NCBI GenBank assembly: GCA_964188305.1
Contig: OZ076890.1
Source of the DNA: Podarcis bocagei
Lineage: Eukaryota
Length of the DNA stretch: 64,000 bases
Direction: 5' to 3' (one strand)
Of the stretch, positions 19,631 to 64,000 are shown piece by piece (positions within the stretch are counted from its first letter, which is position 1; each line of letters starts with the position of its first letter). A program made the translations under genes and the position numbers. The notes below the pieces were generated by a model. The model was given only the letters and a program-made list of their open reading frames with translations, searched no databases and was not told the DNA's origin.

Positions 19631-20388
19631 TCCTAGTGAAGTATAAATAAATGTGATGGTGGTGGTGGTGGTGGTGGTGGTGATAGGGCAGGCTCTGCTA
19701 AGACACCTCCTTCCTTGGAGGTTTTTAACCAAAGGTTAGATGGCCATCTGTCATGGATGCTTTAGCTGAAATTCCTGCATTGCAAGGGGTTGGACTAGAT
19801 GACCCTTGGATCCCTTCCAACTCTACAATTCTATGAACAAGGACTTATTTGGAAGTGGTGAGCATCTAAATTCAATCCATCCTTTATCAAAGGAGCCATC
19901 TGATTGAGCAATTTCCTTTGCCTTCTTGTTTCTCCTCCTTCAAGCACACTTTCACAACTAACCAAAGGAATCCAATGCATAATGACTTCTCTCTTGGCAA
20001 GATTCACCACCAAAAGTGGACAATGAGCTTAGCTCCTCTAGAAACTGAACCCAAGACACTGGGGGCAGCAAGACACTGGGGGCAGTGGTTGTCAGACTGA
20101 CAACCAAGAAGAGGGGCACAACTTGCCCATTAGTCCTTTTTAAAAAAACATTTATATTTAGTATACATTAAGTCCATGTAGACAAACAAGAAAGCAAGCA
20201 TGACTACAGCAGAAGATTATCGCAATGCCTCAGCAAGACAAAAATAGAAATCTTTAACTTCAGGACATATCACTGACTGCCTTTGCTATCATCTAATTTC
20301 CATTGTTCCCCTTCAGGGCCATGTCAAGATGAGAACACTTGCTTCCCTTCCAACAAGAACAGAACAGGAAATTTTCTCACAGACTTAC

Positions 20389-20632
20389 CCTTCTTCCTCC
20401 ACCATGGTCCTTCTTGGATCGAGTAAGAGAGTTCTTTAAACTCAATGTTCACAGCCGGTCTCCGCGGAAGGTAGGAGAAGCGATGGGCTTCTGTCAATGC
20501 ATTGTCCACCTTTTTTAAATGGCCATTGAGTAGGTGGACTTCTTGGGTGTCGGTTCCATTGGAGACCACTTCATCTACTGAAACGCATACAGACTTTGGT
20601 TCAGGCATAGCAGATGCAGAATTGCTGGCATT
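20389..20632 (-). CDS. ABCG1: ABCG1 coding exon 2
   Basis: 244-nt exon bounded by ttccag| and |gtaagt. Encodes [26 protein letters not shown]...[49 protein letters not shown], closely matching the human ABCG1 N-terminus as recalled. Confidence 0.97.
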
Positions 20633-42856: not shown

Positions 42857-43071
42857 TCACAAGTTCTGAAAGGCAAACTTTCCCATGGGTCCTTGAGGTT
42901 CGATAATATATTTGCCCATTTTTTTCTTCATATAAAGCCATACTGTGACCATTAGCACAATAGATATCAGCGCAATGCTAAAGAGCACTGCAAGGACAAT
43001 GACTCCTGTTTTCCAGGCTGAATTGTCTTCCGTTGGCTTCAGATCTTCCACTTGCTGGGATGTGGCAATTG
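42857..43071 (-). CDS. membrane mucin, last coding exon (TM plus cytoplasmic tail)
   Basis: tttcag| acceptor, phase 1; AIATSQQVEDLKPTEDNSAWKTGVIVLAVLFSIALISIVLMVTVWLYMKKKMGKYIIEPQGPMGKFAFQNL*; hydrophobic helix followed by KKK stop-transfer. Confidence 0.9.
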
Positions 43072-43437
43072 CTGAAAGTATATTGTGGAAACAAAAAATT
43101 AGCTTAGTGCTGAAACGAGCAGAGCTGGTCCAAGACATTTTGCTGCCTGAGGCCAAACAGCAAACGGTGCCCCAATGCCAAAAAGTCAAGGTGTATGGAA
43201 TCTAAGGCAGTCAAGTCCTTTTGGTACTTGAGGCATTCAATCCTACATGTGCCTCTCCCTTGAAGCAATAATAAATAAATAACAGTTGGCTGCTCTTTCA
43301 TGAAAGTCAGCTGTCATAGGTGGCCGCCACACATTACTTCATGGTAGGGCTGGCCCAAATTAGCACAAGTCACTGGATACTATTTTTTCCACAGCATCAT
43401 AGGAAATTTTCTCAGGGAGCACTAGACATTGTTAATA

Positions 43438-43666
43438 CAGTCATACCTCGGGTTACAGACACTTCAGGTTGTGCATTTTGCGGGTTGTGCACTGTGCTGA
43501 ACCCGGAAGTACCAGAACGGGTTACTTCCAGGTTTCGGCGCTCGTGCATGTGCAAAAGCACCAAATCATGACCTGCGCGTGCGCAGATGGCGCTGCGGGT
43601 TGCGGGCGCTGTGGGTTGTGAACGTGCCTCCCGTACGGATCACATTTGCAACCCGAGCATTCACTG
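43438..43666. mobile_element. pogo/Tigger-like MITE
   Basis: TA|CAGTCATACCTCGGGTT...AACCCGAGCATTCACTG|TA. Confidence 0.75.
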
Positions 43667-45645
43667 TACTAACGTTTTACTTGTGACACCTCAAGTGTTA
43701 CTTTATTTTATGAGGCTTGCAGGCAGATATTTTAAACTACTTATAGACAAGAGTAATCAGCTTTCAATCAAACTGAATGTGCCACAATGTATATGGAAAA
43801 GATAGCACAACATTTAGGCCCTATGCTTGGGGAAGGTTTTTCTAAGTTGGTGGATTATTGAAAAGCTACAGAGCCGGCAAAGTCTCTGGAAATTAATTTG
43901 CCATGAAACAGCCAAACTAAGCTACATGTGACCAGGAGTGGGTGGTAAGGAGATGTTCCACTGCAGACCTGCCCCCGGCCCCAGCAAATAGCACTGCTGC
44001 CATGACCTGGGATGGTGAGGAGGGAGGTTTGGGTCGTTTTGCCAGCCCGTCCTTCATTTTACAGTGAGCATGCAATTATCCATTGTTGCCAGTATTTTCT
44101 TTGCTAAACAGTAGGTGACTGCTCTTGCTACAGTCCTGATCTAGATTTCTGCCCCATTCCTGCACCTACTGTTTGTCCAGGTAGGATGGCCTGATCTGGA
44201 TCAGGATTGCAGTAGGGACAAAAGGTTAAAACCCCCCACTTGGGATTTTCTTCCCTCCCATTCACCTCCTATTTAGCACAGAAAAAGAAGGACCACATTT
44301 GTTAATTACATGCACAGCATAATGTGGCAAATGGCCAAAGCTGGTTTTGCATGTGGAATTCTAATGTCATCAGTCTGTTATCTAGGTAAACACCTGTGCA
44401 AGTCTGAATCTGTCTTATGTACTGAGGATTCAAAAGGTCTGAACATTTACTTTGGCTTCCACTGGACATCCTACCCAAAGGGGGAGGGAAACCCACTTCC
44501 TGCATACCTTGTGATTTTGAATATGCAAGCAAGACAATGCCCAGACATTTGAAGCAGTACACAAAAATGGGATATTATTTCTTGCCTAATCTCCCTGAAC
44601 AAAGGATGGATCCTTCACATGACTGGACTCACTTCTAATAGAGAAAGAATGCAAGTACACATGAGAATGATGGACTAAAATCCAAGTAGCCATGGAAAGC
44701 TACAGTCCCTGGATTTCCCATTGCTTCTTAGAATCAGCAGTTTGTGTAGTATCAAACAATGCAAAGACCACTCCTTCTGTTGGTAAAGTGGGAGTGATGT
44801 ATGAAGGCAACCTGAGAGTGAAGAAACATTACACTTTTCCTCAAATACTCCCCAAACAAGCTGAGGATGACAGCTGTGCTTCCTGTATGCCCTCTCAGGT
44901 TGCCAGCAAATATTTGCACGTATAACCTGTTGGCCAACTGGAGCTGGGCAGTTTTAGAATCTTCCCTTTAGTTAGGGCTTAAGAGGCATTTATTTATACC
45001 CTGTTTGGAGCCTGCAAGGAAGAGGGACCTATGCCCTGTGGGTGCATCCTCAAAGTTTGGTTTCTTAACACAGCCACAGCACAAACAATCCATTTGGAAA
45101 CAAAGGGTGGATTCCTCTTTGTACTAAAAGGATGGAGAGGAACTAGGTTCAGAGGACACAATGGAGTGTGTCCTCCAGTTCTGGTTATAGCCCCACTGAA
45201 GATTCACTCCATGGCAAGGAGGACTCCCCCTCTGCTGTGGAAAGCTTGGGTGGAACTGACCTTGGAGGACACCCATGAAAGGGTACAAAGGTTCCTTTCT
45301 GTGGTGAGATGGGCTCCCTCTTCACCACTTAAAGGATCCTTGGGTGAGCGGGGGATTGCCCCTTCACCACTGAAAGTATAGGGCAAACTAGCCCCCGATA
45401 AGATATGTTTTGTAGTACGTGTCCTCCAAGCCTCAGTCACACTTCCCAAATAATATTTTAAACAGGAAAAGCTTTCTCTCCTTGCTGCTGAACTGATCTG
45501 AAGGAGGCCTCAAAGGGAATACATCCTCTGATCTGGGAATTCAACTTCCAGTCCTTTGGGAGGGAGGTCGTGATGGAACTTGTCATGGTGGGCACTTTTT
45601 GACTAGATCAAGAGCTATTTGTAGTGCCCTGAACAACAAGATTAC

Positions 45646-45844
45646 CTGTTACTGTTACAGCAGTCTTGTTATCAAGCATTTTTGTTACTACTTCTGTTAA
45701 ATAGTCCGTGAAATTTTTTGTTCCAATCCACTGTTGTCCTTGCAGGAGAAATGCGAAATATGCATCCACACTTCCAGCTTGGTATCCCACCATTTCAATA
45801 TTAAAGCTGCCATCTCCAAGCTTCATTATCATTCCTTTAGAAAC
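45646..45844 (-). CDS. membrane mucin, SEA-2 C-terminal half
   Basis: 199 nt, phase 0 to 1; VSKGMIMKLGDGSFNIEMVGYQAGSVDAYFAFLLQG...TAVTVT; GSV motif. Confidence 0.85.
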
Positions 45845-46924
45845 CTGAAAACATTTATATTTATTCCAAACTGTCAATACGTAAGAAACGGGCAAGACAC
45901 CATCACCATTCCCCCAAACGTTAACTCTTTTCACTTTTACCGGACTTCTTTTAAAAGAACAAATAAAAGAGACCATGAGATTGGTCTAAACAAAACATAT
46001 TTAACATTTCCAAAATGTTGTGCAATAAATAGCCTAAAGTTTCATATGTAAGAGCTCATATGTGACAGCAGTTCTTTGCCATACTGTACCAAGGTCTGCT
46101 ACCCAAAGTCAGATGAGAAATGGTGGCTCAGGGACTGTAGTCAATTTCCTACTGCACTCCTGCATATACGTATATATGCAGGTATATATTATCTACATAT
46201 GCAAGAACAAATCTATATTGAGTTACTACTGAACAGAGTTTCTAATAGCCTAATTGTTTGTAGAGTGGCAGGGCCTTTTTGTTATTACTATGATTAAACA
46301 AGTGGGAGTCAGGAACCCCTGTCTGACTGCAAATCATCTAGCAATCTAAAAGCTGACCTTGTTCTAGGCTTCTTCCCATAGAGATCCAAGAATTCCACTC
46401 CCGCTGTTGGTTCCAGGTCTCCTGCTGGACTCCTGTCACACTCTGCTCATGCCCCCCCCATCCCACCCCAGTTCACAGAACTCAGTGAGCCCCAGTTACC
46501 ACTGTCCTGTGGGATAGGTCAACACTGATGAAAGACATACAACATGTGTAGAAGTATAAGGATTTGCTATCTGGACTGGAAATATTAGGGTATGTTGCTG
46601 GTTTTGGGTTGGGTACCCTTGGGCAAGAAGCATAAAGACATAGACACTCATTATTATTTTTTAATTACTATGGCTTTTCTAGTTTGAGACTTTTATTCCA
46701 TGGTGCTTTTTACTGATCCCCAAAGGTTCTAAATATTGCAGCATTTTGTTTGTTATGCTTTTAGGGTATGATTTTAAATATTCCCAATCTCGTAATCTCA
46801 GATAGGGGGGCACATTCTATTGCTGCTGTTGTGTATACTGGTTTGAAATAGATTTGCACATTGTGTTGAGAATGCTTCTTCAAAAGATAATGACTGCAAC
46901 AAGGGATAATGTTAAAGAACTCAC

Positions 46925-47037
46925 AGTTGTTCTGATTTTGTTAGACATATTCTTATAGATCTCACTTTCTGGATTATAAAGGTCAGGTGTAAAACTCTGG
47001 TTTTTGAATAAAATTCTGCAAGCAAATGCTTGTTTGC
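46925..47037 (-). CDS. membrane mucin, SEA-2 N-terminal half
   Basis: 113 nt, ttttccag| ... |gtgagt, phase 1 to 0; SKQAFACRILFKNQSFTPDLYNPESEIYKNMSNKIRTT (F.PDL.NP.S..Y SEA signature). Confidence 0.88.
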
Positions 47038-47262
47038 CTGGAAAAGAAATGCAACACAATTAACACCTCAATCAGTTCCATCTCAGAACTAGTTTTCCAT
47101 ATTTCATTGGCTACAGCTCATGCCTGTCTGGAACAAGACAAACCACAACCCCAGGTTTGGATGTAACTCTGTGCCAAACTGTGTTGAGGCAGAATCAGCA
47201 GGTTCAGGGGAGTGCAGCAGCTATAATCATCTCTATGAGAACCCCTCAATACTGACACTAAG

Positions 47263-47263
47263 A

Positions 47264-47317
<54 letters not shown>

Positions 47318-47839
47318 CTGCCAAAAAAGCTGAAAAACATCTTCATATATGTGACAATGACCACAAGAGTTTTAATAGCACAAGGATGGAAGACTGAAGA
47401 AACCCCAACTAAAGAATCATGGCAAGAAAAATTGATGGACTATGCAGAACTGGCAAAACTGACACATAAGCTACGGGACAAGGATAACTGTGACTTTAAA
47501 GATGAATGGGAACCCTTTACAAAGTATTTGAAGACGCAACAAAGCGAACTGGACTCCTTGGCTGGCTTTGAATAAACATTCACAAACTTTTTATTGATAA
47601 TAATCAGCTAAATTGTTTGAGGATCTATACAACTGTGTAACAATGCAGAAAACAGCATTCTTACAGAAGTCAAAGACTGGAACTGAGGGAAGTCGGGGTG
47701 GGGGGTTGTGTAGGAGGGTGGGGGGAGGGAGGAAAAATGGGGGGGAATAAGGATGATATGTTTCTGGATAATATGTTTTGTTTTAATTTTGAATAAAAAA
47801 AGTTTTTTAAAAAAGGAAATTGGGAAAGAAAAAGAAAAA
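47263..47839 (+). mobile_element. 5'-truncated L1 with (ATT)n at its 5' junction
   Basis: 15-bp TSD AATACTGACACTAAG (47248-47262 / 47840-47854); ORF2 end ...RVLIAQGWKTEETPTKESWQEKLMDYAELAKLT...EWEPF; AATAAA and A tail. Confidence 0.9.
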
Positions 47840-48396
47840 AATACTGACACTAAGCCATGGCTTGACTTAGTGTTACTTGCTTATTAGGTCAGCGTGAACA
47901 GCCTTCCAGTCTAGATATATTACGACTGGATATGCAACTCCAGAATACATTCTTATGTTTTTATTAGATTATTTTTAATGGTGGTTGTGAACCAGCTAAA
48001 AGGACTGAAAAGTGAGCTGTTTGTTTATCTGCTTAACAATTATAAATAAACATTTTATTTTTGCTCATGTGCTAAAAAATGTTGATGTGCTCAAAGAAAT
48101 ATGGTCTTAACACTTGCTAAGAAAAAAATTCATTGTAAAACTGTCAGAAGAGCACCCAACTTATTCAGGAGGGATGGTGAACCCATGGCCCCCCAAAGGA
48201 TGTGGGTCTATAGCTGCCAGGCTCCCTGGCCATTGGCCATGCTGGCTGGGGCTGATGGGAGTTGGTGACAAATGGCACCTAGAAGTTCACAGGTTTCCCA
48301 GTCCTGCTCTACAAAACATCATTTGTAGTCATGTATTTAAGCAATCTAATCTTACAGTGGCTAAAAAAAAAATCATAATACATATTTACAACATAC

Positions 48397-48477
48397 TTGA
48401 ACAGATGTCACGTTGTAAGGAAAGACACACAGTGGATTGCAAGCAAATATTAGGCATGTTCAGACACAAGATGGGGT
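48397..48477 (-). CDS. membrane mucin, small Cys-rich linker exon
   Basis: 81 nt, cttttatag| ... |gtatgt, phase 1-1; DPILCLNMPNICLQSTVCLSLQRDICS (4 Cys). Confidence 0.75.
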
Positions 48478-48625
48478 CTATAAAAGAAGCACAAAACCAA
48501 ATTAATCATGTAAAAGATAAGATTCCTCCTCTTGCTGAACTGCCATTTACGTAACTGAAATATAAACTTCAAAATATGAAATGCAGCTTATGAAAGTTGT
48601 ACTCCCTGCCTGATTTCAAAGAACA

Positions 48626-48867
48626 CAGTGGTACCTCAGGTTAAGTACTTAATTCGTTCCGGAGGTCCGTACTTAACCTGAAACTGTTCTTAACCTGAAG
48701 CACCGCTTTAGCTAATGGGGCCTCCTGCTGCCGCCGCGCCGCTGAAGCACGATTTCTGTTCTCATCCTGAAGCAAAGTTCTTAACCTGAAGCACTTTTTC
48801 TGGGTTAGCGGAGTCTGTAACCTGAAGCGTATGTAACCTGAAGCGCCTGTAACCTGAGGTACCACTG
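48626..48867. mobile_element. pogo/Tigger-like MITE
   Basis: CAGTGGTACCTCAGG...CCTGAGGTACCACTG|TA. Confidence 0.9.
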
Positions 48868-49862
48868 TAATACCAAAAGGTTTGTTGCATATCCTAATTC
48901 CAGACCCAAATACACCCATTTTTGGAAATAGCAATTTAGAGATGATGCGTATGTACATTTGACACATGGCAGTCACTGGAAATCCATGTGCAATTGTCCT
49001 AAGCATCACTACTCACAGGAATATGCTTTTAGCATACTAGCCCAAACCCACATTGACAGTAGTTTGTACTGGCGTAACAAATTCTATATAGCCACCCTCA
49101 CATAGTACTCATGCAAAATCGTCTCTACTAATTGAAGAGACACCAAGGATTGCCCTCCCTCTGGCATTGTATAGCTTCCCTACGCCAATGTCCACACATT
49201 AAGAGAGGACATCTGCAGAAGAAAAGCCTAAACTTGTCAACCTTTACATGCATAGGTTTCCCTTTTGAGACATCCAGATTCAGAGGACATATGGGGTAGG
49301 GGCAGCAGCATGGTCCCCCAGCCACTTCAACGCAGGAAACCCCTTTCAGCTAAGCAACATGTCAAGTGGGGGCTATAGCCTCTTGGCGCCAACTCAGGAA
49401 AATGCAAGTAGTGCTAGTGATTCAGAAGAAGTGCTAGAATCCGGATCAAATTCACAAGGGAGTACAGTATGCTTTTGGAAGTACCTCCTATCATTTATCT
49501 GGCATTATGAAGGTCAACACCAGGGGTGATTTTTCTATCAAACAGACCTTCCTTGAACTAGCTTTAATTAGTCATGGCTCGACCTACTGAAACTGTTGCA
49601 CAACAAACTCATCGTGCACTCCATTACACTTCATGTTACTCTAACGCGCCTTGAATGAACCACTGCAGCTGGAGAAATTTAGCCTGCATTGTGCTAAAAA
49701 CAGGAATAAAAGGGCTTTTGAAAAAAGGGACTCCTGACAGCAGTGAGATGTGCACATGTGCATCCCATGATGAAGCAGTGAAGCTTAAACCTTAATCATT
49801 TAATTAGCCATACAGCTTTATAATTTTAATCATCATATCATGGGAAGGTCATATTCACTAAC

Positions 49863-49997
49863 CTTGACACTCTGTTCCAGGATTACTTGTATTCAGATCT
49901 GTTATGCCTGGATAACATTGACATTTATAGCTGCCAATAGTGTTCTCACACGCAGCCAACTTGGAACAGGCGTTATTTTCCTTGCATTCATTTATAT
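49863..49997 (-). CDS. membrane mucin, calcium-binding EGF exon
   Basis: 135 nt, phase 1-1; DINECKENNACSKLAACENTIGSYKCQCYPGITDLNTSNPGTECQ (DINEC...C.NT.GSY.C.C). Confidence 0.93.
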
Positions 49998-50959
49998 CTG
50001 GAAGAGGGATGGGGTAAGAAACAACTGCAATATTCTGCTATAGTAATAAATTCTAGCATTGAAGCAAATAAGGAATTTCATGTTCTATACATGTGGAAGA
50101 GTAGTCGTAATCCTCCAGGGGAAACTTTCAAAACTCTTGCAACCCTCCCCTATCTTTAGATGGGCCTGACTGTGAAAGACACTTTCCCTCTGCAGTTGGG
50201 ACACAGTGAGACTTCGGTTTTCTCTTCACTGGAGACCCTCAAAGCACTTGTTTTTGGGAAAGCTCTCTTGAAGTAAGAAGCATGTCTGCAGAACAAGTGG
50301 GTTGGGAATCAGTGCTTTTACAGATTAAAACACAGGATGGTGTATTGCTATTTAGAGGCAATTCTCACTGAAATCGATAGTTTGCACACATGCAGACTAT
50401 CCGCAAATACAGTTTTACAGCCCAGTGAGCCTACCAGCCCACAATAAAACTGGAAGCTAGACAACCTTTAGTCCCATCTTCATCCCAACAACACTAAAAT
50501 TGCACTTTTCTCATCTCTACTATTGAATCAAGGCAGATCAGCATCACTTTCTTCCCTCTTTGTCATTTATTTTTTTTAAAAAACCTCCAGTCAGTATTTT
50601 GTAGGAGGGATTCAAGCACATACTGAAACTTCAGATTTATGTATTTAAAATGAATTAAAGCACCCTGTACCCCTAGGGCAACAAATCCACTTTTTTAAAA
50701 ATCTGGACTTTTTCCAGTTTGGAAAGTGACAGGGAGATACATTGAAAAGTATGGGGTGAATGAAGGTTGAATGAGGGACACATAAACACCCTGCAAACAG
50801 GATGAATGTTCATTAGCATAGAGCTGTGCCATAAGCAAATCAGAATGAATACTCATACAGTATAGACCGGATATAGCCTAGCCATTGTGTAATCTTTGGG
50901 CAAGCAAATCAGGATGAATGTTGAATAAGCAGACCCTCTGAAGAAATCCCCGTTCTTAC

Positions 50960-51097
50960 CTTCGCATTGTCTTCCTGGCACCTGGGGACTCAGATCCAAA
51001 AATCCCGGCTTACATTCACATGAATAATTTGTGCTTTGGGGGATGCAGTAGGCAAATTCAGAACAGCCATTGTTGTCTGGCTGACAGGCAGGGATTA
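50960..51097 (-). CDS. membrane mucin, EGF exon
   Basis: 138 nt, phase 1-1; VIPACQPDNNGCSEFAYCIPQSTNYSCECKPGFLDLSPQVPGRQCE (6 Cys). Confidence 0.93.
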
Positions 51098-51251
51098 CTA
51101 TGACAAATTTCAGTAAAAGAGCAACAAAATTAATGCACGAAGGTCAACATAAAAGGCACCACAATCGCTTATATGCATGCTGTCATTTTTAAAGAGAAAG
51201 CACTTTCATTGGCATACAATATAATCCGTAATTTATTTACACACAGAGAAC

Positions 51252-51341
51252 CATAGTTGTCAACGTTTTCCTTTTTTTAAGAGAAATTCCCTTATTCCGA
51301 ATAGGATTCCTTGCAAGAAAAGGGAAAAGTTGACAGCTATG
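51252..51341. mobile_element. 90-bp hAT MITE (inverse of 39296-39385)
   Basis: CATAGTTGTCAAC...GTTGACAGCTATG; TSD CAGAGAAC/CACAGAAC with one mismatch. Confidence 0.85.
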
Positions 51342-51902
51342 CACAGAACTATGCCACCAAATGGATCTCTTAATGCCTGTCACTTGCTAGGGCTGATGGG
51401 AGCTAGTGTCTAGGAGGATCTGCAGGACCACAGGTCCCCCAGCCCCATTTAACAGTTGCTTCTGGGAAACACTCTGGGGTAGCATCATGATTTTATCACT
51501 ATTTTTGCTACTATTTTTCCACTGTTGTTAACCGCATAGGATGTTTTATTTGCTTAAAAAGGCAGGATATAAATGTTCAAATAAGCACGTCTTGTCCACT
51601 GTATGAGCACAGACTAACTGTGAAGCAGGCCAGGAAAGGCAATGCAGACTTGGCACATCTGCACTGGCTGAATCACACATAAACCGACTGAAGAGCCATG
51701 GCTAAGTGGGGATAGGCAGCACACGTTTTGCGTTTAGACAGTCCTAGGTTTAGTCTCTGGCATCTCCCTGGAATAGGCTCCCGTCTGAACCCTAGAGAGC
51801 CCCTGTCGGTCAGTATGGGTACTACAGAGTAAGATGAACCAATATTCTGACTTGATATGAGGAAGCTTCCTATGTTCCTACCATATAATAGAAAGACCAT
51901 AC

Positions 51903-52122
51903 CTTCTATGGAAGTCCGAGTGAGGTCTACATCCAGATGCCTGCTTTTGTTTAAGGCTTCGATTACAGCCCTTTCCACCTCATTGTGTGCTATATTTCTA
52001 TCTGGAACCATCTCGATGATGAAGGTCACAATCACACTGCCATTTCTAATCTCAGTTATTGTTATACGCATTTTCCCAGAATCTATTAATGCTCTCAATG
52101 AAGGTGGCAAGTTGTTTATTAT
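51903..52122 (-). CDS. membrane mucin, SEA-1 C-terminal half
   Basis: 220 nt, phase 0 to 1; IINNLPPSLRALIDSGKMRITITEIRNGSVIVTF...LDVDLTRTSIE; GSVIV motif at 52027-52041. Confidence 0.92.
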
Positions 52123-53846
52123 CTGTAAAAGTGGCAGGTTTGAGATTATTTTCTATGCTTTGCATAATATTCAGAATAATTTGTTTATCATTTCTTCCAA
52201 TAAATGTTGGATCTCAGACTGTCAACAGCCAAAAGTCTGGCCTTAGGCAGGTTTGTACCCGAGAATAGAAAATAAAGGCATTCTTTCTGGCCTCACAACG
52301 GAGAATGGATTGCATAGGTGGGCATCTGGAGTTTGTTGGACTTCAATTTCCATCATCCCCAGACGGCATGGCCATGATAAGGGGTGATAGGGGCTGAATG
52401 TGAACACTGTCTGAAGGGCCAAGATTCAACACAGACCTAAAATTTGCAAGTTCCTTACCACTCTGTCTTGTTTTTCGACTTTTTGAAAAATTATCCAGAT
52501 TCTGCTGGATGCTCCAGCTTGGTGCAACATCCTTGAATCTAAGGAGTTGCTGACTTTTGTTCTCCTGAGCCCCACACCACATCTCTCACAGCCCACTAGA
52601 TTCCTCCCAAGCGTCTTTTTCTTTCCTGTTGTCTGAGGCTTCCTTATCTCAGGCAGCAAACATAAAATCAAGCTTCCTGGCCCTTACTTCTGATTAGACA
52701 TTATGTTGTTGCTGTTATTACTACTACTACTACTACTACTAATAATAATAAATAAATATTTGCTTTGTAGCCATCTAATACCAAATGGCATCTAGGTAAC
52801 TTACTACACATCCAGAAATTGAAAACAATAACCATAAATAGCAAAGATCATAACATTACAAAACCAAGCCAACCTCCAAAAGCCACAAACTATAATTGAC
52901 AGCTGTGACAGACAGCTGAGCTAGACCGGAGTCTGGTGATGCAGTACCTCAGAACTCCACCAGAGTGCTGCAGCCTCTCTCTGATTGGCTACCAAGACAG
53001 CGAGCCAGAAGTGGGTGGAGACAGTACTTTGGGAGGAAAAATAAAAAGAGCCTTTCTAAGAGAGTGTGGCGATAGAGAGAAGACGAGGGGGAGAGTTGAG
53101 AGTTGTTTCTGTGTGTATAACATCCACTCTGAGAAAATTATCTACAGCAAGAGAAGGGAGTCTCAGAGCTTAAGATAGAAAGACAGTGCTTAGTGTCTTG
53201 TGAGAATATTCAGACAGGAGTTAACTAGAGGGCTGAGTTTGAGCAAGGAGAGGGAGAAGCTGTGAGGGTACAGTCTGTTTGGATCTCATTTCAGTCAGGA
53301 GGGGAGAGATCTTCTGGAAAGAGAAGACTGCCAAACCAGTTAAGAGGGGTGTGGCGATTCCCTGGGTCTACCTCAGGATTGTGATTGACAGAAGGTTGGG
53401 AAGCTGACAGAAAGTACCACCTTGTTTCAAGCATTCTCTTCCATGAAATGGTAATCATGTGGAGGGGGGAGCCATGTCTGTCAATGTTGTCCCTGCCAGC
53501 CCTGCTGGAGATAACTTATGTAAAGGAGTGCCGGCTGAATATGTGCAAGCTCACCCCAACTCTGCATGTGGGTGGAAGAGGCGAGGCTAGCAGGGCCCAG
53601 TTTGCCTTCCATGCAATTGCAAGGGTGTGGTAGGAAATGGCTGAAAGGGATCAAGTCTGCCCAATCTGTCGTCAGTCTCAGGGAAGCACATAGTCATAGC
53701 TGTGCCATGGAAAGGGGGATTTAACGTTACTCTGCTGAGGATCAGTAAGAGAGCACTGAAAATATGGGCATACTCCAGCCCAGGCCAGAACAGAGGGCCT
53801 GCGATTTTGAGGGGGCCTGCCCATTGGTAAGAATTATTGAAATGGG

Positions 53847-53887
53847 TTCCACTGTTTAAAACCTTTAATAAATATCTTTTAAAAAAA
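53847..53887 (+). mobile_element. 41-bp extremely 5'-truncated retrotransposon insertion
   Basis: 18-bp TSD AAGAATTATTGAAATGGG (53829-53846 / 53888-53905); contains only AATAAA and an A tail, resembling the L1-derived 3' end at 32660-32691. Confidence 0.8.
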
Positions 53888-54108
53888 AAGAATTATTGAA
53901 ATGGGGCCTAAATTCACCATCTGGCCTGCACAAACTCTGGTCGAGGCAAATGTGAACATTTTAAGTCCCACTAGATTCTAAAGAACCATTAAGTTCATTT
54001 TTAAGTCAGTTTCATTGAAATCAATGGGGCTTAAAAATGCTTGTCTTGGGTTATGCTCAGTGCTTTTAACAAATTACTTTTCATTTTTTTAAATGCTGCG
54101 GATGATAC

Positions 54109-54221
54109 CTCTTCGGTGACATTTTTTTGAAGCTCCTGAAACTCTGTACTTGATTTGTTGCTGAACTGAGGTATGTACTTCTTATTTGTAATCCTGGCTG
54201 TTCCACGATAGGCTGTGCCTT
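54109..54221 (-). CDS. membrane mucin, SEA-1 N-terminal half
   Basis: 113 nt, phase 1 to 0; EGTAYRGTARITNKKYIPQFSNKSSTEFQELQKNVTEE. Confidence 0.9.
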
Positions 54222-55938
54222 CTATAAGGAATAAGAGAACCATTTAGTTAATAGTATAGGTAACATTTTTAGTACAGAATACTTATGCTGTTGTTGTTGC
54301 TGCTGCTGCTGTTCCAGATAGATAAACTAATATTCATTAGTTGTGAGGTCCTTAAGGACAATGTGAAACAAATGAAACAATCTTTTCTCATTTAGACTGA
54401 AATTCCACATTTACTTGAGAGCAAATTCCATTGAACATAGTGGGACTTATGTCCAAATAAACATGCATAGGATGTATTATTTGTCTGTTTACTTACTTAT
54501 TTAAAATATTTATATTCTACCTTCCCAACAAAATGTTCAAGGCTGCTTACAACAGGTATTAAAATACGAAAATACAAATAAATTAAAAGCACCAAAAAGG
54601 ACAGAAATGGCATATAAAATAGCTTTTTAAAAGATTCCATATGCCAGGAAAGCCAAATGCCTGCCCAGAAGGTATTGGGACATTAGTTTCTTAAGGCTGC
54701 AGACCTATTCCACTTACCTAGGAGTAAGCCTTATCCATAAAACTCCATTGGATTTTTTAAACTGATTTTTATAACACATTTAATTAAGAAAGAACATTAA
54801 AATACAATAACCATTAATGCAGTCATCTTAATTTAAACATAGAAATCAATGTGTGCCCTCCAAATGTCCAGATATTCACATGGAGTTGATAAGAAGCATA
54901 TTCAAATATAGCGGGGGGGGGGCGGGGGCGGGTAAACTCTGCAGGGCATTTCATAATAGGCGGTGGGTGTTTATCCTTCCAGGCTCAAAGTATGAGTCTC
55001 TTGGTGACTGTGAAGGCTTGCAAAATCCTCTTTTGTTTTCCTGCCGTTAATCCCCATACTACAGAGATATAATTATGGAAGGGGGCTATTGTTTTTGTTT
55101 TGTTATGTATTTTATGTTTTTGTTTTGTATTTTTATGTTGTGAACTGTCCTGTGATCTTTGAATGAAGGGTGACATACAAATTTTAATAATAATAATAGT
55201 AATAATAATAATATACCTCTACTAATCATCATCATCATCATATTAAAGTACATGGACATCCACATATATCAAGGATTTTGCAAATAGAAAACTTATATGG
55301 AAAACTTCAGACCATCCTCCCCAGCCCCCTGTTGGCCATACATTCAGAAGCCATAGGAAGTGGTCCAATGTGAGAGCCAGGGTGGTGTAGTACTTAGAGT
55401 GTTGAACTAGGACCTGGGAGACCAGCGTTCAAACCCCTACCCTTTATGTCTCTCTAAGCTTCTTGGAAGAAAAATGTAAATAAAAAAAATAAAAATTCTG
55501 ATGCACATGCTCAAGATTCCTTCTCACAGGGGAAAATCTAGGGCTAGTTAAGAGTCCACCTCATGATGCATCTTTATGTGCATAGGACTGCTTCACACAG
55601 CAGCCAAAAAAGCCATCAACTTGCTCACTAGGCTCAGTCTTCTTGCAAAAGCTGTGTGCAACATTTGGATGTCAGGGATTCCCATGAAGAAAGCGGTGAG
55701 CAATGAGAGATATCCTGGGTTGTCCCATTACATGAGCTAACCCACCTAATGCACCAAAGAGACAGAAAAGGGAAATTCACAAATGGCTGGAGATTAATTC
55801 CCTATTCATATTTTGGGTTTTCCTTTGGGGACACTGTTTGAATGAAAGCTAGTGCTGAGCAAAATGTATCAGAATACTGTCTGGTACTGTATGCATTACT
55901 ACAATAAAGCAAGTGTAGATGGATGATTGAGATAATAC

Positions 55939-56193
55939 CTGTCCGAACCATCACGGAGGAACTGAACTTGTTACTGCAACTCCACACGTCCACAGTTACT
56001 GTATACAAACCACCTGGAGAAAGGTTTCCAAATACCATCCTGGTGTCATTTGTGACAGTGTTATTTATAACTGTGTTATCTGCCATGAGAGACACGGTAT
56101 AAGGGCTGTCCCTTCCCACACTCTGAAGAAACCAACGGAATTGTATCACTTGGCTGGTTACTTTTTCAAGTTGAATGTAGAAAGCATCTACAG
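55939..56193 (-). CDS. membrane mucin, fibronectin type III exon
   Basis: 255 nt, phase 1-1; ...VTSQVIQFRW...YTV...FGNLSPGGLYTVTV...VRT (FN3 W, Y and L.P...Y.V.V signatures). Confidence 0.92.
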
Positions 56194-57434
56194 CTAAACA
56201 AAACAAAAACAAAAATACACATCTGATGTCAAAGGTGCATTTCAACAACTCTGGAAATATTCGCAAAATGTTAAATATGATGGGGGGGAGAATATGTTAT
56301 TTTGCTGAGTTTCTGCTATGGTTGAATTCTTACTCCCACTTCAAAAAAGTAAATCCAGTGAATAAATGGTAAATTCTAGCTTTAATAAGCCTTCCAAAAA
56401 CAACATAAACCAGAAGGGGAAAAAATAAGGAATATAAAGAGATTCTGGGGCGCCATATCACAGTATGTATATGAGAGGGTGGGAAATTTGCAGCAACGGT
56501 ATAATCAAGCCCTCAAACAACTTTTTCTAACCCTCCCACCCCCCAAACCCCTGGTTTTGTTGCTGTAAACATCAAAGTGACATACTGCTCAGGTGAATGT
56601 AGAGATTTAACCCACTCTGCCAATGCCATGATGGATTTGCAAAGATGTCCCTGAAACTTCACACATCACATCAATCATCTGAGGAGCAGGAAGGGATTGA
56701 TAAACCCACTCCTCAGCAGATTTTCATGGATTGGAGAAAAGAGAAGCCATTTGTATGTGTGCACACCTGAGTGAGTCTGTGTGTGCATGTATGTATGTGT
56801 GTGTGTGCTTCTGGCTTTTCTTATAAGGGCATGCAAAATGTGTGTGTGTGTGTGTGTTTAGGATTGCCAGGCGGCCGAACCCACTGTTGACCACATGTAC
56901 TGCTCCTCTTGGATAGAAGTTATTCAATATGTCACACTGCACTCACAATGTAAAATAACAAAATAGCATAGCATACCCATGTGGGACTTACTACAAAATA
57001 TTATGGTAAGGAATAGAGCCATGTAGACTATTCCATTCCATTCCATTGCATTCCCTCCTTCACTATTTTTCTACCATCCACCTATGAAAGTAAGTAAGCA
57101 TTCCATGACCAGGAAGCATTCTTCACCCAATTTAATATTGTGCTCCAGGGATCTTCTATTCCACAGCATATGCAAAGTGAGACAAGAAATAGAGCCTCCC
57201 TGAGGATGGTGCAGTCTGACCCATATAAGGGCTGGGGGCAGAAAACAAGAGTGATCTTTCTATATATGAAGGGGGGGGAAGAATTTTAAATATATATTCT
57301 AATTGGGCAAAGACAAGAAATTAAGGGGTACTGTAAATTAAAATATAATTTGTAAAGACAAAAAATGGTAGTGCAAATTTGATACACAGTTAAAAAGAAC
57401 ATCAAATATTATAAAAAAAATCTAATACACTCAC

Positions 57435-60400
57435 AGCATTCTTCAGGCATTTTGGTAGAGGGTACTGGGTGGGGTGTTTTCACAGAAGAGAATACCTCTG
57501 GCTTATGGGATGTCATTGAAAAGTCACTTAGAGAAGTTCTGGCCAAGGTTCTGGAAACTGCTGTACTTTCTGTGAGAGAATCATTCCTAATAGTGTGCGG
57601 AGAGGATACAGAGGAGGTCTGTGCACTTCCCAAAGATGTGCTGGATGAAGCCATAACAGAGGAAATGGATGCTGGGCCTCTGGGCCGAGTGGCAGCCGAG
57701 CTCCCTATTGCCACTGGTGCTGCAGAGCTGTTGTCAGCAGTGTGGGTGGTGCTCCTCAACGATGTAGCAGGCATCCCCGTTGGTGATAGTGGAGAGGTGA
57801 CATGAGCTGCGGCGGCTGAGCTGGATTCCACGGAGGTGTCCCGCACTCCGCTAGGAGAGGTCTGCCCGCTTTCCGAAGACGCGCTGGATGAAGCCATGCT
57901 GGAGGCACTGGATGCTGGGCCTGCCGTCCAAGTGGTAGCCGGGCTCTCTGTTGCCACTGGTGCTGCGGAGCTGTTGTCAGCAGTGTGGGTTGTGGCCGAG
58001 AACACACTTGTCCCTGAGATAACGGGAGATGTTTCTAAAGAAACGTGCTCCGTGGTGGTCCGCTGAGGTAGCGCTTCAGAGCTGGAGGATGCCATGCTCC
58101 CGGAGGGTCCAGATGATATGTCAGACTCTGTCGTGGAAAAAGAGGAGACTTCCAGCTTGCCTGTTCCCGTACTTGATAAGCCGGCCGAGGTGCTGGGACC
58201 AGCTGCGCTTTCTGTCCCGGAAGAACTAGCCGTCATGTGGGAAGAGGTTGCGGAGCCCTCCACCTGTGGAGAACTTGGGCTTCTGGAGAAGGACGCAGCA
58301 GGGGAACCGGTGGTCCCACCCACGCTTGTGGCTGGCGCTGCAGAGCTCTGGCCGCTCAGGGTGATTGCAGCTTCCGAGGAGGCTGTCTCTTTAGTCGGGG
58401 TGGCTGCATTCGTACTGGTTCTCCTCAACGATGCAGAAGGCGTCCCCGTTGGTGCTAGTGGAGAGGTGACGTGAGCTGTGGCGGCTGAGCTGGATTCCAC
58501 GGAGGTGTCCCGCACTCCGCTAGGAGAGGTCTGCCCGCTTTCCGAAGACGCGCTGGATGAAGCCATGCTGGAGGCACTGGATGCTGGGCCTGCCGTCCAA
58601 GTGGTAGCCGGGCTCTCTGTTGCCACTGGTGCTGCGGAGCTGTTGTCAGCAGTGTGGGTTGTGGCCGAGAACACACTTGTCCCTGAGATCCCGGGAGATG
58701 TTTCTGAAGAAACTTGCTCCGTGGTGGTCCGCTGAGGTAGCGCTTCAGAGCTTGAGGATGCCGTGCTCCCGGAGGGTCCAGATGATATGACAGACTCTGT
58801 CGTGGAAAAAGAGGAGACTTCCAGCTTGCCTGTTCCCGTACTTGATAAGCCGGCCGAGGTGCTGGGACCCACTGCGCTTTCTGTCCCGGAAAAACTAGCA
58901 GTCATGTGGGAAGAGGTTGCGGAGCCCTCCACCTGTGGAGAACTTGGGCTTCTGGAGAAGGACGCAGCAGGGGAACCGGTGGTCCCAGCCACGCTTGTGC
59001 CTGGCGCTGCAGAGCTCTGGCCGCCCAGAGTGCTTGCAGCTTCCGAGGAGGCTGTCTCTTCAGTCGGGGTGGCTGCATTCGGAGTGGTGCTCCTCAACAA
59101 TGCAGAAGGTGTCCCCGTTGGTGCTAGTGGAGAGGTGACGTGAGCTGTGGCGGCTGAGCTGGATTCCACGGAGGTGTCCCGTACTCCGCTAGGAGAGGTC
59201 TGCCCGCTTTCCGAAGACGCGCTGGATGAAGCCATGCTGGAGGCACTGGATGCTGGGCCTGCCGTCCAAGTGGTAGCCGGGCTCTCTGTTGCCACTGGTG
59301 CTGCGGAGCTGTTGTCAGCAGTGTGGGTTGTGGCCGAGAACACACTTGTCCCTGAGATCCCGGGAGATGTTTCTGAAGAAACGTGCTCCGTGGTGGTCCG
59401 CTGAGGTAGCGCTTCAGAGCTGGAGGATGCCGTGCTCCCGGAGGGTCCAGATGATATGACAGACTCTGTCGTGGAAAAAGAGGATACCTCCAGCTTGCCT
59501 GTTCCCGTACTTGATAAGCCGGCCGAGGTGCTGGGACCCACTGCGCTTTCTGTCCCGGAAGAACTAGCCGTCATGTGGGAAGAGGTTGCGGAGCCCTCCA
59601 CCTGTGGAGAACTTGGGCTTCTGGAGAAGGACGCAGCAGGGGAACCGGTGGTCCCACCCACGCTTCTGCCTGGCGCTGCAGAGCTCTGGCCGCCCAGAGT
59701 GCTTGCAGCTTCCGAGGAGGCTGTCTCTTCAGTCTGGGTGGCTGCATTTGGAGTGGTGCTCCTCAACGATGCAGAAGGCGTCCCCGTTGGTGCTAGTGGA
59801 GAGGTGACGTGAGCTGTGGCGGCTGAGCTGGATTCCATGGAGGTGTCCCGTACTCCGCTAGGAGAGGTCTGCCCGCTTTCCGAAGACGCGCTGGATGAAG
59901 CCATGCTGGAGGCACTGGATGCTGGGCCTGCCGTCCAAGTGGTAGCCGGGCTCTCTGTTGCCACTGGTGCTGCGGAGATGTTGTCAGCAGTGTGGGTTGT
60001 GGCCGAGAACACACTTGCCCCTGAGATCCCAGGAGATGTTTCTGAAGAAACGTGCTCCGTGGTGGTCTGCTGAGGTAGCGCTTCAGAGCTGGAGGATGCC
60101 GTGCTCCCGGAGGGTCCAGATGATATGACAGACTCTGTCGTGGAAAAAGAGGAGACTTCCAGCTTGCCTGTTCCCGTACTTGATAAGCCGGCCGAGGTGC
60201 TGGGACCCGCTGCGCTTTCTGTCCCGGAAGAACTAGCCGTCATGTGGGAAGAGGTTGCGGAGCCCTCCACCTGTGGAGAACTTGGGCTTCTGGAGAAGGA
60301 CGCAGCAGGGGAACCGGTGGTCCCACCCACGCTTGTGGCTGGCGCTGCAGAGCTCTGGCCGCTCAGGGTGATTGCAGCTTCCGAGGAGGCTGTCTCTTTA

Positions 60401-63400
60401 GTCGGGGTGGCTGCATTCGTACTGGTTCTCCTCAACGATGCAGAAGGCGTCCCCGTTGGTGCTAGTGGAGAGGTGACGTGAGCTGTGGCGGCTGAGCTGG
60501 ATTCCACGGAGGTGTCCCGCACTCCGCTAGGAGAGGTCTGCCCGCTTTCCGAAGACGCGCTGGATGAAGCCATGCTGGAGGCACTGGATGCTGGGCCTGC
60601 CGTCCAAGTGGTAGCCGGGCTCTCTGTTGCCACTGGTGCTGCGGAGCTGTTGTCAGCAGTGTGGGTTGTGGCCGAGAACACACTTGTCCCTGAGATCCCG
60701 GGAGATGTTTCTGAAGAAACTTGCTCCGTGGTGGTCCGCTGAGGTAGCGCTTCAGAGCTTGAGGATGCCGTGCTCCCGGAGGGTCCAGATGATATGACAG
60801 ACTCTGTCGTGGAAAAAGAGGAGACTTCCAGCTTGCCTGTTCCCGTACTTGATAAGCCGGCCGAGGTGCTGGGACCCACTGCGCTTTCTGTCCAGGAAAA
60901 ACTAGCAGTCATGTGGGAAGAGGTTGCGGAGCCCTCCACCTGTGGAGAACTTGGGCTTCTGGAGAAGGACGCAGCAGGGGAACCGGTGGTCCCAGCCACG
61001 CTTGTGCCTGGCGCTGCAGAGCTCTGGCCGCCCAGAGTGCTTGCAGCTTCCGAGGAGGCTGTCTCTTCAGTCGGGGTGGCTGCATTCGGAGTGGTGCTCC
61101 TCAACAATGCAGAAGGTGTCCCCGTTGGTGCTAGTGGAGAGGTGACGTGAGCTGTGGCGGCTGAGCTGGATTCCACGGAGGTGTCCCATACTCCGCTAGG
61201 AGAGGTCTGCCCGCTTTCCGAAGACGCGCTGGATGAAGCCATGCTGGAGGCACTGGATGCTGGGCCTGCCGTCCAAGTGGTAGCCGGGCTCTCTGTTGCC
61301 ACTGGTGCTGCGGAGCTGTTGTCAGCAGTGTGGGTTGTGGTCGAGAACACACTTGTCCCTGAGATCCCGGGAGATGTTTCTGAAGAAACTTGCTCCGTGG
61401 TGGTCCGCTGAGGTAGCGCTTCAGAGCTGGAGGATGCCGTGCTCCCGGAGGGTCCAGATGATATGACAGACTCTGTTGTGGAAAAAGAGGAGACTTCCAG
61501 CTTGCCTGTTCCCGTACTTGATAAGCCGGCCGAGGTGCTGGGACCCGCTGCGCTTTCTGTCCCGGAAGAACTAGCCGTCATGTGGGAAGAGGTTGCGGAG
61601 CCCTCCACCTGTGGAGAACTTGGGCTTCTGGAGAAGGACGCAGCAGGGGAACCGGTGGTCCCAGCCACGCTTGTGCCTGGCGCTGCAGAGCTCTGGCCGC
61701 CCAGAGTGCTTGCAGCTTGCGAGGAGGCTGTCTCTTCAGTCGGGGTGGCTGCATTCGTACTGGTTCTCCTCAACGATGCAGAAGGCGTCCCCGTTGGTGC
61801 TAGTGGAGAGGTGACGTGAGCTGTGGCGGCTGAGCTGGATTCCACGGAGGTGTCCCGCACTCCGCTAGGAGAGGTCTGCCCACTTTCCGAAGACGCGCTG
61901 GATGAAGCCATGCTGGAGGCACTGGATGCTGGGCCTGCCGTCCAAGTGGTAGCCGGGCTCTCTGTTGCCACTGGTGCTGCGGAGCTGTTGTCAGCAGTGT
62001 GGGTTGTGGCCGAGAACACACTTGTCCCTGAGATCCCGGGAGATGTTTCTGAAGAAACTTGCTCCGTGGTCGTGCCCTGAGGTAGCGCTTCAGAGCTGGA
62101 GGATGCCGTGCTCCCGGAGGGTCCAGATGATATGACAGACTCTGTCGTGGAAAAAGAGGAGACTTCCAGCTTGCCTGTTCCCGTACTTGATAAGCCGGCC
62201 GAGGTGCTGGGACCCGCTGCGCTTTCTGTCCCGGAAGAACTAGCCGTCATGTGGGAAGAGGTTGTGGAGCCCTCCACCTGTGGAGAACTTGGGCTTCTGG
62301 AGAAGGACGCAGCAGGGGAACCGGTGGTCCCAGCCACGCTTGTGCCTGGCGCTGCAGAGCTCTGGCCGCCCAGAGTGCTTGCAGCTTCCGAGGAGGCTGT
62401 CTCTTCAGTCGGGGTGGCTGCATTCGGAGTAGTGCTCCTCAACGATGCAGAAGGCGTCCCCGTTGGTGCTAGTGGAGAGGTGACGTGAGCTGTGGCGGCT
62501 GAGCTGGATTCCACGGAGGTGTCCCGCACTCCGCTAGGAGAGGTCTGCCCGCTTTCCGAAGACGCGCTGGATGAAGCCATGCTGGAGGCACTGGATGCTG
62601 GGCCTGCCGTCCACGTGGTAGCCGGGCTCTCTGTTGCCACTGGTGCTGCGGAGCTGTTGTCAGCAGTGTGGGTTGTGGCCGAGAACACACTTGTCCCTGA
62701 GATCCCGGGAGATGTTTGTGAAGAAACTTGCTCCGTGGTGGTCCGCTGAGGTAGCGCTTCAGAGCTGGAGGATGCCGTGCTCCCGGAGGGTCCAGATGAT
62801 ATGACAGACTCTGTCGTGGAAAAAGAGGAGACTTCCAGCTTGCCTGTTCCCGTACTTGATAAGCCGGCCGAGGTGCTGGGACCCGCTGCGCTTTCTGTCC
62901 CGGAAGAACTAGCCGTCATGTGGGAAGAGGTTGCGGAGCCTTCCACCTGTGGAGAACTTGGGCTTCTGGAGAAGGACGCAGCAGGGTAACCGGTGGTCCC
63001 AGCCACGCTTGTGGCTGGCGCTGCAGAGCTAGGGCTGCCCAGGGTGATTGCAGCTTCCGAGGAGGCTGTCTCTTTAGTCGGGGTGGCTGCATTCGTACTG
63101 GTTCTCCTCAACGATGCAGAAGGCGTCCCCGTTGCTGCTAGTGGAGAGGTGACGTGAGCTGTGGCGGCTGAGCTGGATTCCACGGAGGTGTCCCGCACTC
63201 CGCTAGGAGAGGTCTGCCCGCTTTCCGAAGACGCGCTGGATGAAGCCATGCTGGAGGCACTGGATGCTGGACCTGCCGTCCAAGTGGTAGCCGGGCTCTC
63301 TGTTGCCACTGGTGCTGTGGAGCTGTTGTCAGCAGTGTGGGTTGTGGCCGAGAACACACTTGTCCCTGAGATAACGGGAGATGTTTGTGAAGAAACTTGC

Positions 63401-64000
63401 TCCGTGGTGGTCCGCTGAGGTAGCACTTCAGAGCTGGAGGATGCCGTGCTCCCGGAGGGTCCAGATGATATGACAGACTCTGTCGTGGAAAAAGAGGAGA
63501 CTTCCAGCTTGCCTGTTCCCGTACTTGATAAGCCGGCCGAGGTGCTGGGACCCGCTGCGCTTTCTGTCCCGGAAGAACTAGCCGTCATGTGGGAAGAGGT
63601 TGCGGAGCCCTCCACCTGTGGAGAACTTGGGCTTCTGGAGAAGGACGCAGCAGGGGAACCGGTGGTCCCAGCCACGCTTGTGCCTGGCGCTGCAGAGCTC
63701 TGGCCGCCCATGGTGCTTGCAGCTTCCGAGGAGGCTGTCTCTTCAGTCGGGGTGGCTGCATTCGTACTGGTTCTCCTCAACGATGCAGAAGGCGTCCCCG
63801 TTGCTGCTAGTGGAGAGGTGACGTGAGCTGTGGCGGCTGAGCTGGATTCCACGGAGGTGTCCCGCACTCCGCTAGGAGAGGTCTGCCCGCTTTCCAAAGA
63901 CGCGCTGGATGAAGCCATGCTGGAGGCACTGGATGCTGGGCCTGCCGTCCAAGTGGTAGCCGGGCTCTCTGTTGCCACTGGTGCTGCGGAGCTGTTGTCA
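57435..64000 (-). CDS. giant mucin (PTS) exon, 5' end outside the window
   Basis: Single uninterrupted frame of >2180 codons, Ser/Thr/Ala/Pro-rich; ends ...KMPEEC+T|GTGAGT (phase 1, compatible with the FN3 exon). Confidence 0.95.
57750..64000. repeat. coding tandem array, 669-bp (223-aa) unit, >9 copies in window
   Basis: Equivalent ORF starts recur at 58094, 58763, 59432, 60101, 60770, 61439, 62108, 62777 and 63446; units differ only by point substitutions. Confidence 0.97.

Follow-up and report, generated by a model that had tools for sequence, protein, structure and literature searches.

A gene on the minus strand of a 64,000-nucleotide stretch of Podarcis bocagei DNA (contig OZ076890.1 of assembly GCA_964188305.1; this whole stretch is referred to as the window) was found to carry a giant exon with a high content of proline, threonine and serine (PTS), followed by FN3, SEA, EGF-like, calcium-binding EGF (cbEGF), four-cysteine (4-Cys) linker, second SEA and transmembrane (TM) parts. 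The best explanation, at a probability of roughly 0.8, is that the gene stands alone, is expressed and encodes a transmembrane mucin of type I, belonging to an unnamed family conserved across sauropsids. It is probably a sister of UMODL1 (uromodulin-like 1, or olfactorin) that sits between UMODL1 and ABCG1, and not UMODL1 itself. An earlier note on this DNA, made from the letters alone, had described such a distinct mucin at the UMODL1 position, lacking the ZP domain and having FN3 and two SEA parts, and had read it as likely a tandem paralogue absent from mammals.

The nine exons downstream of the PTS exon were placed by open reading frames, AG/GT sites and phase, and domains were assigned by Pfam on single-exon translations. 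All have GT/AG borders and compatible phases. The PTS exon (57435..64000) runs off the window end and has the donor GTGAGT after 57435, in phase 1. It is followed by the FN3 exon (55939..56193, 255 nt, phase 1-1), for which the Pfam fn3 match was weak (E 0.005), whereas fn3 was unambiguous in the orthologues, with E values down to 1e-16. The first SEA domain, SEA1, is made up of SEA1a (54109..54221, 113 nt, phase 1-0; Pfam SEA E 1.2e-7, profile positions 3-40) and SEA1b (51903..52122, 220 nt, phase 0-1), the latter placed by its splice sites and containing the motif NGSVIV. An EGF-like exon (50960..51097, 138 nt, phase 1-1; Pfam EGF and EGF_3) and a cbEGF exon (49863..49997, 135 nt, phase 1-1; Pfam EGF_CA E 2.5e-9) come next. 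The 4-Cys linker exon of 27 residues (48397..48477, 81 nt, phase 1-1) was found by enumeration of phases and splice sites. The second SEA domain consists of SEA2a (46925..47037, 113 nt, phase 1-0; Pfam SEA E 1.3e-4) and SEA2b (45646..45844, 199 nt, phase 0-1; motif AGSVDAYF). Each of the two SEA domains is divided at an equivalent position, its first exon having 113 nt and phase 1-0 and its second phase 0-1. The last coding exon (42857..43071), identified by its acceptor, its TGA stop and an RNA joint, contains a juxtamembrane stretch, the putative TM helix and a tail of 25 residues; the 3' untranslated region extends below 42857. Together the nine exons encode 489 aa. A second, decayed FN3 exon between the cbEGF and Cys exons, as present in Hemicordylus and birds, was not found in the window.

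The 3' part of this chain was observed in RNA. One run, X1, is stored as contigs, and its RNA nature is shown by the spliced contigs that it contains. Their joints were 48397>47037, 46925>45844 and 45646>43071, all GT..AG on the minus strand, with a depth of about 122-129 at the joints compared to 0-10 in the introns. Further contigs covered the last exon and the 3' untranslated region (42603-43074) at a depth of 115-148. The exon letters of X1 differed from the window by 2-3.5%, so X1 comes from a relative and not from the same animal. In addition, one raw read from a stranded RNA-seq run crossed the joint from SEA2b to the TM exon, in an orientation fitting RNA from the minus strand. The joint 48397>47037 shows that the 4-Cys exon is real, and the joint 45646>43071 shows a direct splice from SEA2 to the TM exon. 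Comparison of the nine exons to Podarcis muralis gave a ratio of nonsynonymous to synonymous differences (pN/pS) of 0.29, at a pS of 0.043. Judged from these differences, the nine-exon chain is under purifying selection.

The domain order and span given in the earlier note, as well as its nine phase-compatible exons of about 489 aa, were in this way confirmed on the minus strand by Pfam, splice sites and RNA joints. The note had also stated that no ZP exon precedes the TM exon, and that transcripts with ZP exons would speak against its reading. At the 3' end the RNA ran from Cys to SEA2a to SEA2b to TM with no ZP exon between, and a search of the 64 kb for ZP was blank, as described below.

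Very high RNA depth with many loose ends was seen in all four runs over the intronic segments 43400-43599, 47400-47600 and 48200-48399. These segments behave like interspersed repeats that are transcribed elsewhere, and not like exons of the mucin gene. A long (AAT)n microsatellite lies at 47256-47324, in the intron that separates the Cys exon from SEA2a, and reads appear to be cut there.

The PTS exon is one open frame on the minus strand, extending from 57412 to 63999 and past the window end, a total of 2196 codons. It contains at least nine copies of a 223-aa (669-bp) unit which are 94.7% identical. The period was measured by self-comparison; 669 bp exceeds the 500-bp limit of Tandem Repeats Finder, and that program therefore gave no output. 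Serine makes up 28%, threonine 16%, alanine 14.5% and proline 7% of the residues, with serine, threonine and proline together at 51%. The GC content is 0.60 in the exon compared to about 0.40 in the flanks. Approximately 150 unique residues stand between the repeats and the donor. Two Podarcis proteins (P0002 and P. muralis LOC144327516) matched this PTS tail in their N-terminal part at 89-90% identity, and a matching open frame of more than 10.5 kb is present in P. muralis. A word search using the unique tail returned no match, the annotated Podarcis proteins (411-643 aa) lying outside the length window of that search. A big PTS repeat domain in one large exon, as expected of a membrane mucin, was thus found, with a frame of more than 6.5 kb inside the window.

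The gene models in RefSeq and GenBank for Podarcis, Anolis and Pelodiscus begin at internal Met codons within the PTS repeat. In P. muralis (OZ076957.1) and Pelodiscus the PTS frame continues more than 10 kb upstream, and the public proteins (411-782 aa) are severely truncated at the 5' end.

A start belonging to the family itself was found in two other sauropsids. The house-finch protein begins with a signal peptide that passes at once into PTS sequence. Its first coding exon is 49 nt long, encodes MGT..YLWHFIL.. and has a phase-1 donor. The tortoise counterpart is 70% identical, with equal length and donor phase, and is situated some 3 kb upstream of the PTS frame (the 49-nt exons of tortoise and house finch are at L005:1378-1426 and L003:10001-10049). 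This exon would be a convenient probe for the real 5' end of the gene in lizards. Since it is common to finch and tortoise, the family has a start of its own rather than being the 3' end of a different gene. The lizard would have its own signal-peptide exon outside the window, by analogy with these two species. The idea that the exons are no more than the usual 3' portion of a longer UMODL1 transcript with a ZP domain, or that unrelated exons have been joined by an error of annotation or assembly, draws on the position of the 5' end outside the window and on the RefSeq models of Podarcis, Anolis and Pelodiscus, which are truncated inside the repeat. It is very hard to sustain, as the RNA joins SEA2b straight to the TM exon carrying the stop, the 64 kb hold no ZP, finch and tortoise have a signal-peptide exon of their own just ahead of the PTS exon, and the order of the chain is conserved and under purifying selection.

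Relatives were sought by searching the FN3 exon alone against 1.84 billion representative proteins, which gave 79 matches, some of them named. The best single-domain FN3 match (P0002) and its cluster mates were Podarcis proteins, entered as 'mucin-12' in P. lilfordi, LOC144327516 in P. muralis (643 aa) and LOC128412367 in P. raffonei. The P. muralis protein (P0080) followed the PTS tail and each of the nine exons in collinear order, and its residues 155-643 are the counterpart of the 489 aa. All nine exons were 95-100% identical to it: FN3 96% (residues 156-239), SEA1a 97%, SEA1b 97%, EGF 98%, cbEGF 98%, 4-Cys 96% and SEA2a 100%. The P. muralis locus was 94-97% identical to the window at the DNA level. 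Outside the genus, the FN3 exon was 60-64% identical to those of Anolis, Phrynosoma and Hemicordylus. Anolis ('mucin-12', 4229 aa), Pogona and Pelodiscus have the full chain PTS-FN3-SEA-EGF-cbEGF-Cys-SEA-TM; Phrynosoma has it in equal order, except that its gene model is without the Cys linker. In other turtles a further PTS-FN3-SEA-EGF unit precedes the chain, the order in anseriform and charadriiform birds is FN3-SEA-EGF-FN3-Cys-SEA-TM, and crocodilians, parrots and passerines have shorter versions. The family is distributed over squamates, turtles, crocodilians and birds. Pike-like fish have more loosely related proteins of the form [FN3-SEA-EGF]n-TM. No mammalian member was present among the named FN3 matches (some of the 79). 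A word search using the turtle protein from Platysternon gave a few further orthologues and otherwise EGF proteins of the fibrillin/LTBP type.

The names under which these proteins are deposited include mucin-12, mucin-2-like, mucin-5AC-like, mucin-17-like, flocculation protein FLO11-like, nucleoporin NSP1-like, 'L-lactate dehydrogenase A chain', UROL1 partial (in a bird) and uncharacterized LOC. LOC or mucin-like names are used for this gene in more than 15 annotated sauropsids, which bears out the expectation of the earlier note that the family would be auto-annotated only under mucin-like or similar names. The names appear arbitrary, varying between species as expected from low-complexity matches. 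No paper linking UMODL1, mucins and SEA domains was found in the literature. An inventory of chicken mucins from 2006 lists an unassigned protein with PTS and SEA parts that might or might not be the gene described here (PMC1552070).

The membrane-proximal part was examined in an alignment of Cys and SEA2 from 17 species. The four Cys of the linker are conserved from lizards to birds, and a fifth Cys is found in 'FAC'. G-S-V is invariant in SEA2 in all 17 species, within FRPGSVIAYF in most. In SEA1, G-S-(V/I/L) is kept in all members, and NGSVIV in Podarcis is a candidate site for self-cleavage between G and S. No meaningful match came from sequence searches of the PDB, whether halves of the SEA domains or entire ones were entered, and fold comparison was used instead. 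An AlphaFold model of SEA2, based on the 17-species alignment, had a confidence score (pLDDT) of 80 and the beta-alpha-beta-beta-alpha-beta topology of SEA domains. Its best matches among solved folds were the SEA-containing protease TMPRSS6 (E 4.7e-5), the SEA of MUC16 and the SEA of a mouse transmembrane protease. A SEA stretch adjoining the membrane anchor is thus indicated by Pfam on SEA2a, by the second SEA in orthologues, by the SEA2 model and by the RNA joint from SEA2b to TM. The last exon contains a hydrophobic stretch of 23 residues and the 25-residue tail, both read directly from the sequence. A profile of TM and tail gave 55-115 bits in all sauropsid members, from lizards to birds, compared to 8-17 bits in shark UMODL1. 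The tail motif is G-K/Q/E-Y-x-x-E-P ... F-x-Y/F-x-x-L at the C-terminus.

The automatic names 'mucin-12' and 'mucin-17-like' would suggest an orthologue of a named mammalian membrane mucin, that is MUC12, MUC17, MUC13 or MUC16. Language-model neighbours of the SEA2-TM part were likewise clusters auto-named mucin-16-like and mucin-12 (scores of 0.86-0.87, to be read as leads only), which are possibly the family's own members. MUC3/12/17 have the architecture EGF-SEA-EGF-TM. The FN3 part and the two SEAs flanking an EGF pair are unlike this architecture and unlike the serial SEA repeats of MUC16, the locus is beside ABCG1 and not in the MUC3/12/17 cluster, and the names vary arbitrarily (mucin-2-like, 5AC-like, FLO11-like, NSP1-like). 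Orthology to a named mammalian mucin is for these reasons regarded as highly improbable. The label 'mucin-12' would imply an EGF-SEA-EGF-TM protein without FN3 in the MUC3/12/17 cluster, which was not found here, and this group is set apart by description.

The family nevertheless has much in common with MUC1, MUC3/12/17, MUC13 and MUC16, namely tandem PTS repeats encoded by a single large exon, a SEA close to the membrane with G-S-V as a candidate site for a cut between G and S, a putative single TM helix and a short tail. MUC1 is cleaved in its SEA at FRPG/SVVV (slash at the cut), which may be compared to FRPGSVIAYF of the present family. EGF modules are shared with MUC3/12/13/17, and the SEA structures of MUC16 are matched by the SEA2 fold. 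Unlike these SEA-type mucins, the present family has FN3, two different SEAs separated by an EGF pair and the 4-Cys linker, another locus and a family-specific tail. IMPG1 and IMPG2 also contain two SEAs, EGF modules and a mucin-like region, with a TM in IMPG2, and an IMPG2 cluster was a neighbour at 0.81 (a lead only). The order in IMPG2 is SEA ... SEA-EGF-EGF-TM. IMPG1/IMPG2 differ in this order, in having no FN3 and in locus, and are set apart by description. Among teleosts, the [FN3-SEA-EGF]n-TM proteins (Esox 'serine-rich adhesin for platelets' and a Dallia hypothetical protein) were 39-41% identical to the lizard exons in FN3 and 33-39% in SEA. The Esox protein has a signal peptide and a similar juxtamembrane stretch, WKVA.IVLGVLLG (21 bits). 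Their modules are repeated, and they are without the Cys linker, a SEA2-type domain or the conserved tail motif; they are looser relatives and at most candidate orthologues.

UMODL1 contains EMI, WAP, FNIII, cbEGF, SEA, ZP and TM parts (PMC8874799). The authentic UMODL1 sequences used for comparison were from sharks, rays and chimaera, with no tetrapod UMODL1 among them. Pfam on two of these proteins gave five fn3 domains, cbEGF and Zona_pellucida, as well as WAP and SEA in the sawfish protein. When four shark UMODL1 proteins, ZP included, were compared to the whole 64 kb by tblastn, matches were obtained to the FN3, SEA1b and EGF exons only, and no ZP exon was detected in the window. Identities were 24-26% for the FN3 exon, 36-49% for the EGF exons and 31-32% for SEA1b, the latter to both SEA domains of UMODL1. 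ZP exons were also absent by tblastn from five fetched loci with 10-kb flanks (P. muralis, gull, finch, Pelodiscus and Gopherus). Pfam reported no ZP, WAP or EMI in any of the family members to which it was applied, among them the finch protein with its initial signal peptide and ensuing PTS.

Whole SEA1 domains from turtle and goose were 26-40% identical to SEA-A and SEA-B of shark UMODL1 over about 105 aa, at full length and with E values down to 1e-17. In a tree of SEA domains, SEA1, the fish SEA and both UMODL1 SEA domains were placed on one side of a very long branch, and SEA2 of all sauropsids on the other, with a support of 100/100. This split makes the distal module UMODL1-like and the membrane-proximal SEA2 of another type. 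On the strength of these alignments the FN3-SEA-EGF module is taken to be homologous to that of UMODL1. SEA2 forms its own clade and resembles the SEA-TM anchor of classical membrane mucins, so the gene is a mosaic rather than a UMODL1 that merely lacks its ZP. The relationship to UMODL1 proposed in the earlier note consequently stood for the distal module, where it is favoured by SEA1, by the order FN3-SEA-EGF and by the bird name UROL1, and did not stand for SEA2. The possibility that the cytoplasmic tail was inherited from UMODL1 was also considered. EPQGP..FAFQNL of the mucin and QPTGP..QAFDNY of UMODL1 gave only 8-17 bits, mostly over the TM helix, and this likeness was not counted.

The first coding exon of ABCG1 was identified on the same strand at 20327-20665 (span 20324..20665), where residues 7-97 of human ABCG1 matched with E 2.6e-35; this is 22 kb downstream of the mucin stop. 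In the human genome, UMODL1 is found just upstream of ABCG1, with the same orientation. The mucin therefore occupies the slot of UMODL1, if the human order is taken as the guide, and could be the sauropsid UMODL1 orthologue itself, remodelled by loss of EMI/WAP and EGF-ZP and by gain of the PTS exon and a mucin-type SEA-TM end, with no separate ZP-bearing UMODL1. The bird arrangement FN3-SEA-EGF-FN3-SEA-TM mirrors the middle of mammalian UMODL1 (domain list in PMC8874799), a bird member was auto-named 'UROL1', and no ZP-bearing sauropsid protein was seen among the search matches. However, the searches were blind to such a protein: the FN3 query was too distant, and the word searches were either swamped by EGF proteins or, for shark UMODL1, returned only shark UMODL1. 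While LOC or mucin-like names are given to the mucin in the sauropsids mentioned above, the gene symbol UMODL1 is used in papers on chicken and turtles (PMC13314891, PMC13221643). Moreover, SEA2 has no counterpart among the UMODL1 SEA domains, and the signal-peptide exon is unrelated to the N-termini of shark UMODL1. A remodelled orthologue is accordingly thought unlikely, and a sister gene of UMODL1 is preferred. Such a sister would resemble UMODL1 in its position and orientation upstream of ABCG1, in FN3-SEA-EGF(-cbEGF), in a SEA1 that clusters with the UMODL1 SEAs and in a single-pass terminal anchor. It would differ in its lack of EMI, WAP and ZP, in the giant PTS exon after the signal peptide, in a second SEA of another type directly before the TM helix and in a tail of faint likeness.

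Several points weigh against the preferred reading of a sister gene encoding a membrane mucin. Paralogy to UMODL1 is supported indirectly, the comparison being limited to shark-type sequences. Three bulk RNA-seq runs had a depth of about 1 or less for the mucin gene. The 5' end of the lizard gene is beyond the window, with the family's own signal exon known from finch and tortoise only. O-glycosylation, SEA cleavage and membrane insertion are predictions from sequence and fold. Finally, Podarcis SEA2 is alone in having YQAGSVDAYF where the family has the near-invariant FRPGSVIAYF, and has a long branch of 0.47 in the SEA tree; cleavage may be altered in this genus.

With regard to origin, the distal FN3-SEA-EGF module would share its ancestry with UMODL1, and the proximal SEA2-TM anchor would be of the classical membrane-mucin type. 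In the proposed working, the PTS array would be densely O-glycosylated and project from the cell as an extended glycocalyx rod, and FN3, the EGF pair and the disulfide-rich Cys linker would form a rigid stalk. Each SEA may cleave itself between G and S of G-S-(V/I/L) while folding, with the halves then held together non-covalently. Under mechanical load the SEA subunits could come apart and release the mucin part, as happens in MUC1/3/12/13/16/17. The tail, which is short and ends in a conserved Tyr/Phe-x-x-Leu, may serve in sorting or signalling. A wider proposal can be put forward tentatively, with rather more doubt than belief: an old vertebrate sister of UMODL1, retained by reptiles and birds, with more loosely related proteins in fish, and lost from or never present in mammals, would combine a UMODL1-type stalk and a mucin SEA-TM anchor, carry two different, serial self-cleaving SEAs and have a conserved tail that may signal.

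If this is true, the mucin would offer two SEA break points for force-dependent shedding, and a new named family would join the short list of vertebrate membrane mucins. That list is well studied and has been defined almost wholly from mammals. The family delimited here has a definite architecture, and its diagnostic Cys-SEA2-TM-tail signature is kept in reptiles as well as in birds. In public annotation the family is hidden behind a dozen unrelated names, and this systematic problem of naming could be cured by curation. Modules common to a ZP-type matrix lineage, UMODL1, and to mucins are pointed to by the same comparison, and a concrete gene is now available for comparative work on the glycocalyx and mucosal barrier in birds and reptiles.

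Irregularities were noted in three gene models of family members. The Platysternon megacephalum protein TFK05623.1, named 'L-lactate dehydrogenase A chain', ends in about 200 non-homologous residues and is a mis-named and probably mis-extended model. In Pogona vitticeps LOC110074045, an additional Cys-SEA2 unit occupies residues 151-281, a long way upstream of the normal chain, and could be due to a tandem duplication, to a second copy merged into the model or to misassembly. In Gopherus evgoodei a separate 'gene' of 1271 aa (L005:6160-9975) lies just upstream of the 'mucin-17-like' model and contains more PTS repeat with the same N-terminal words. The Gopherus mucin has probably been split into two gene models.

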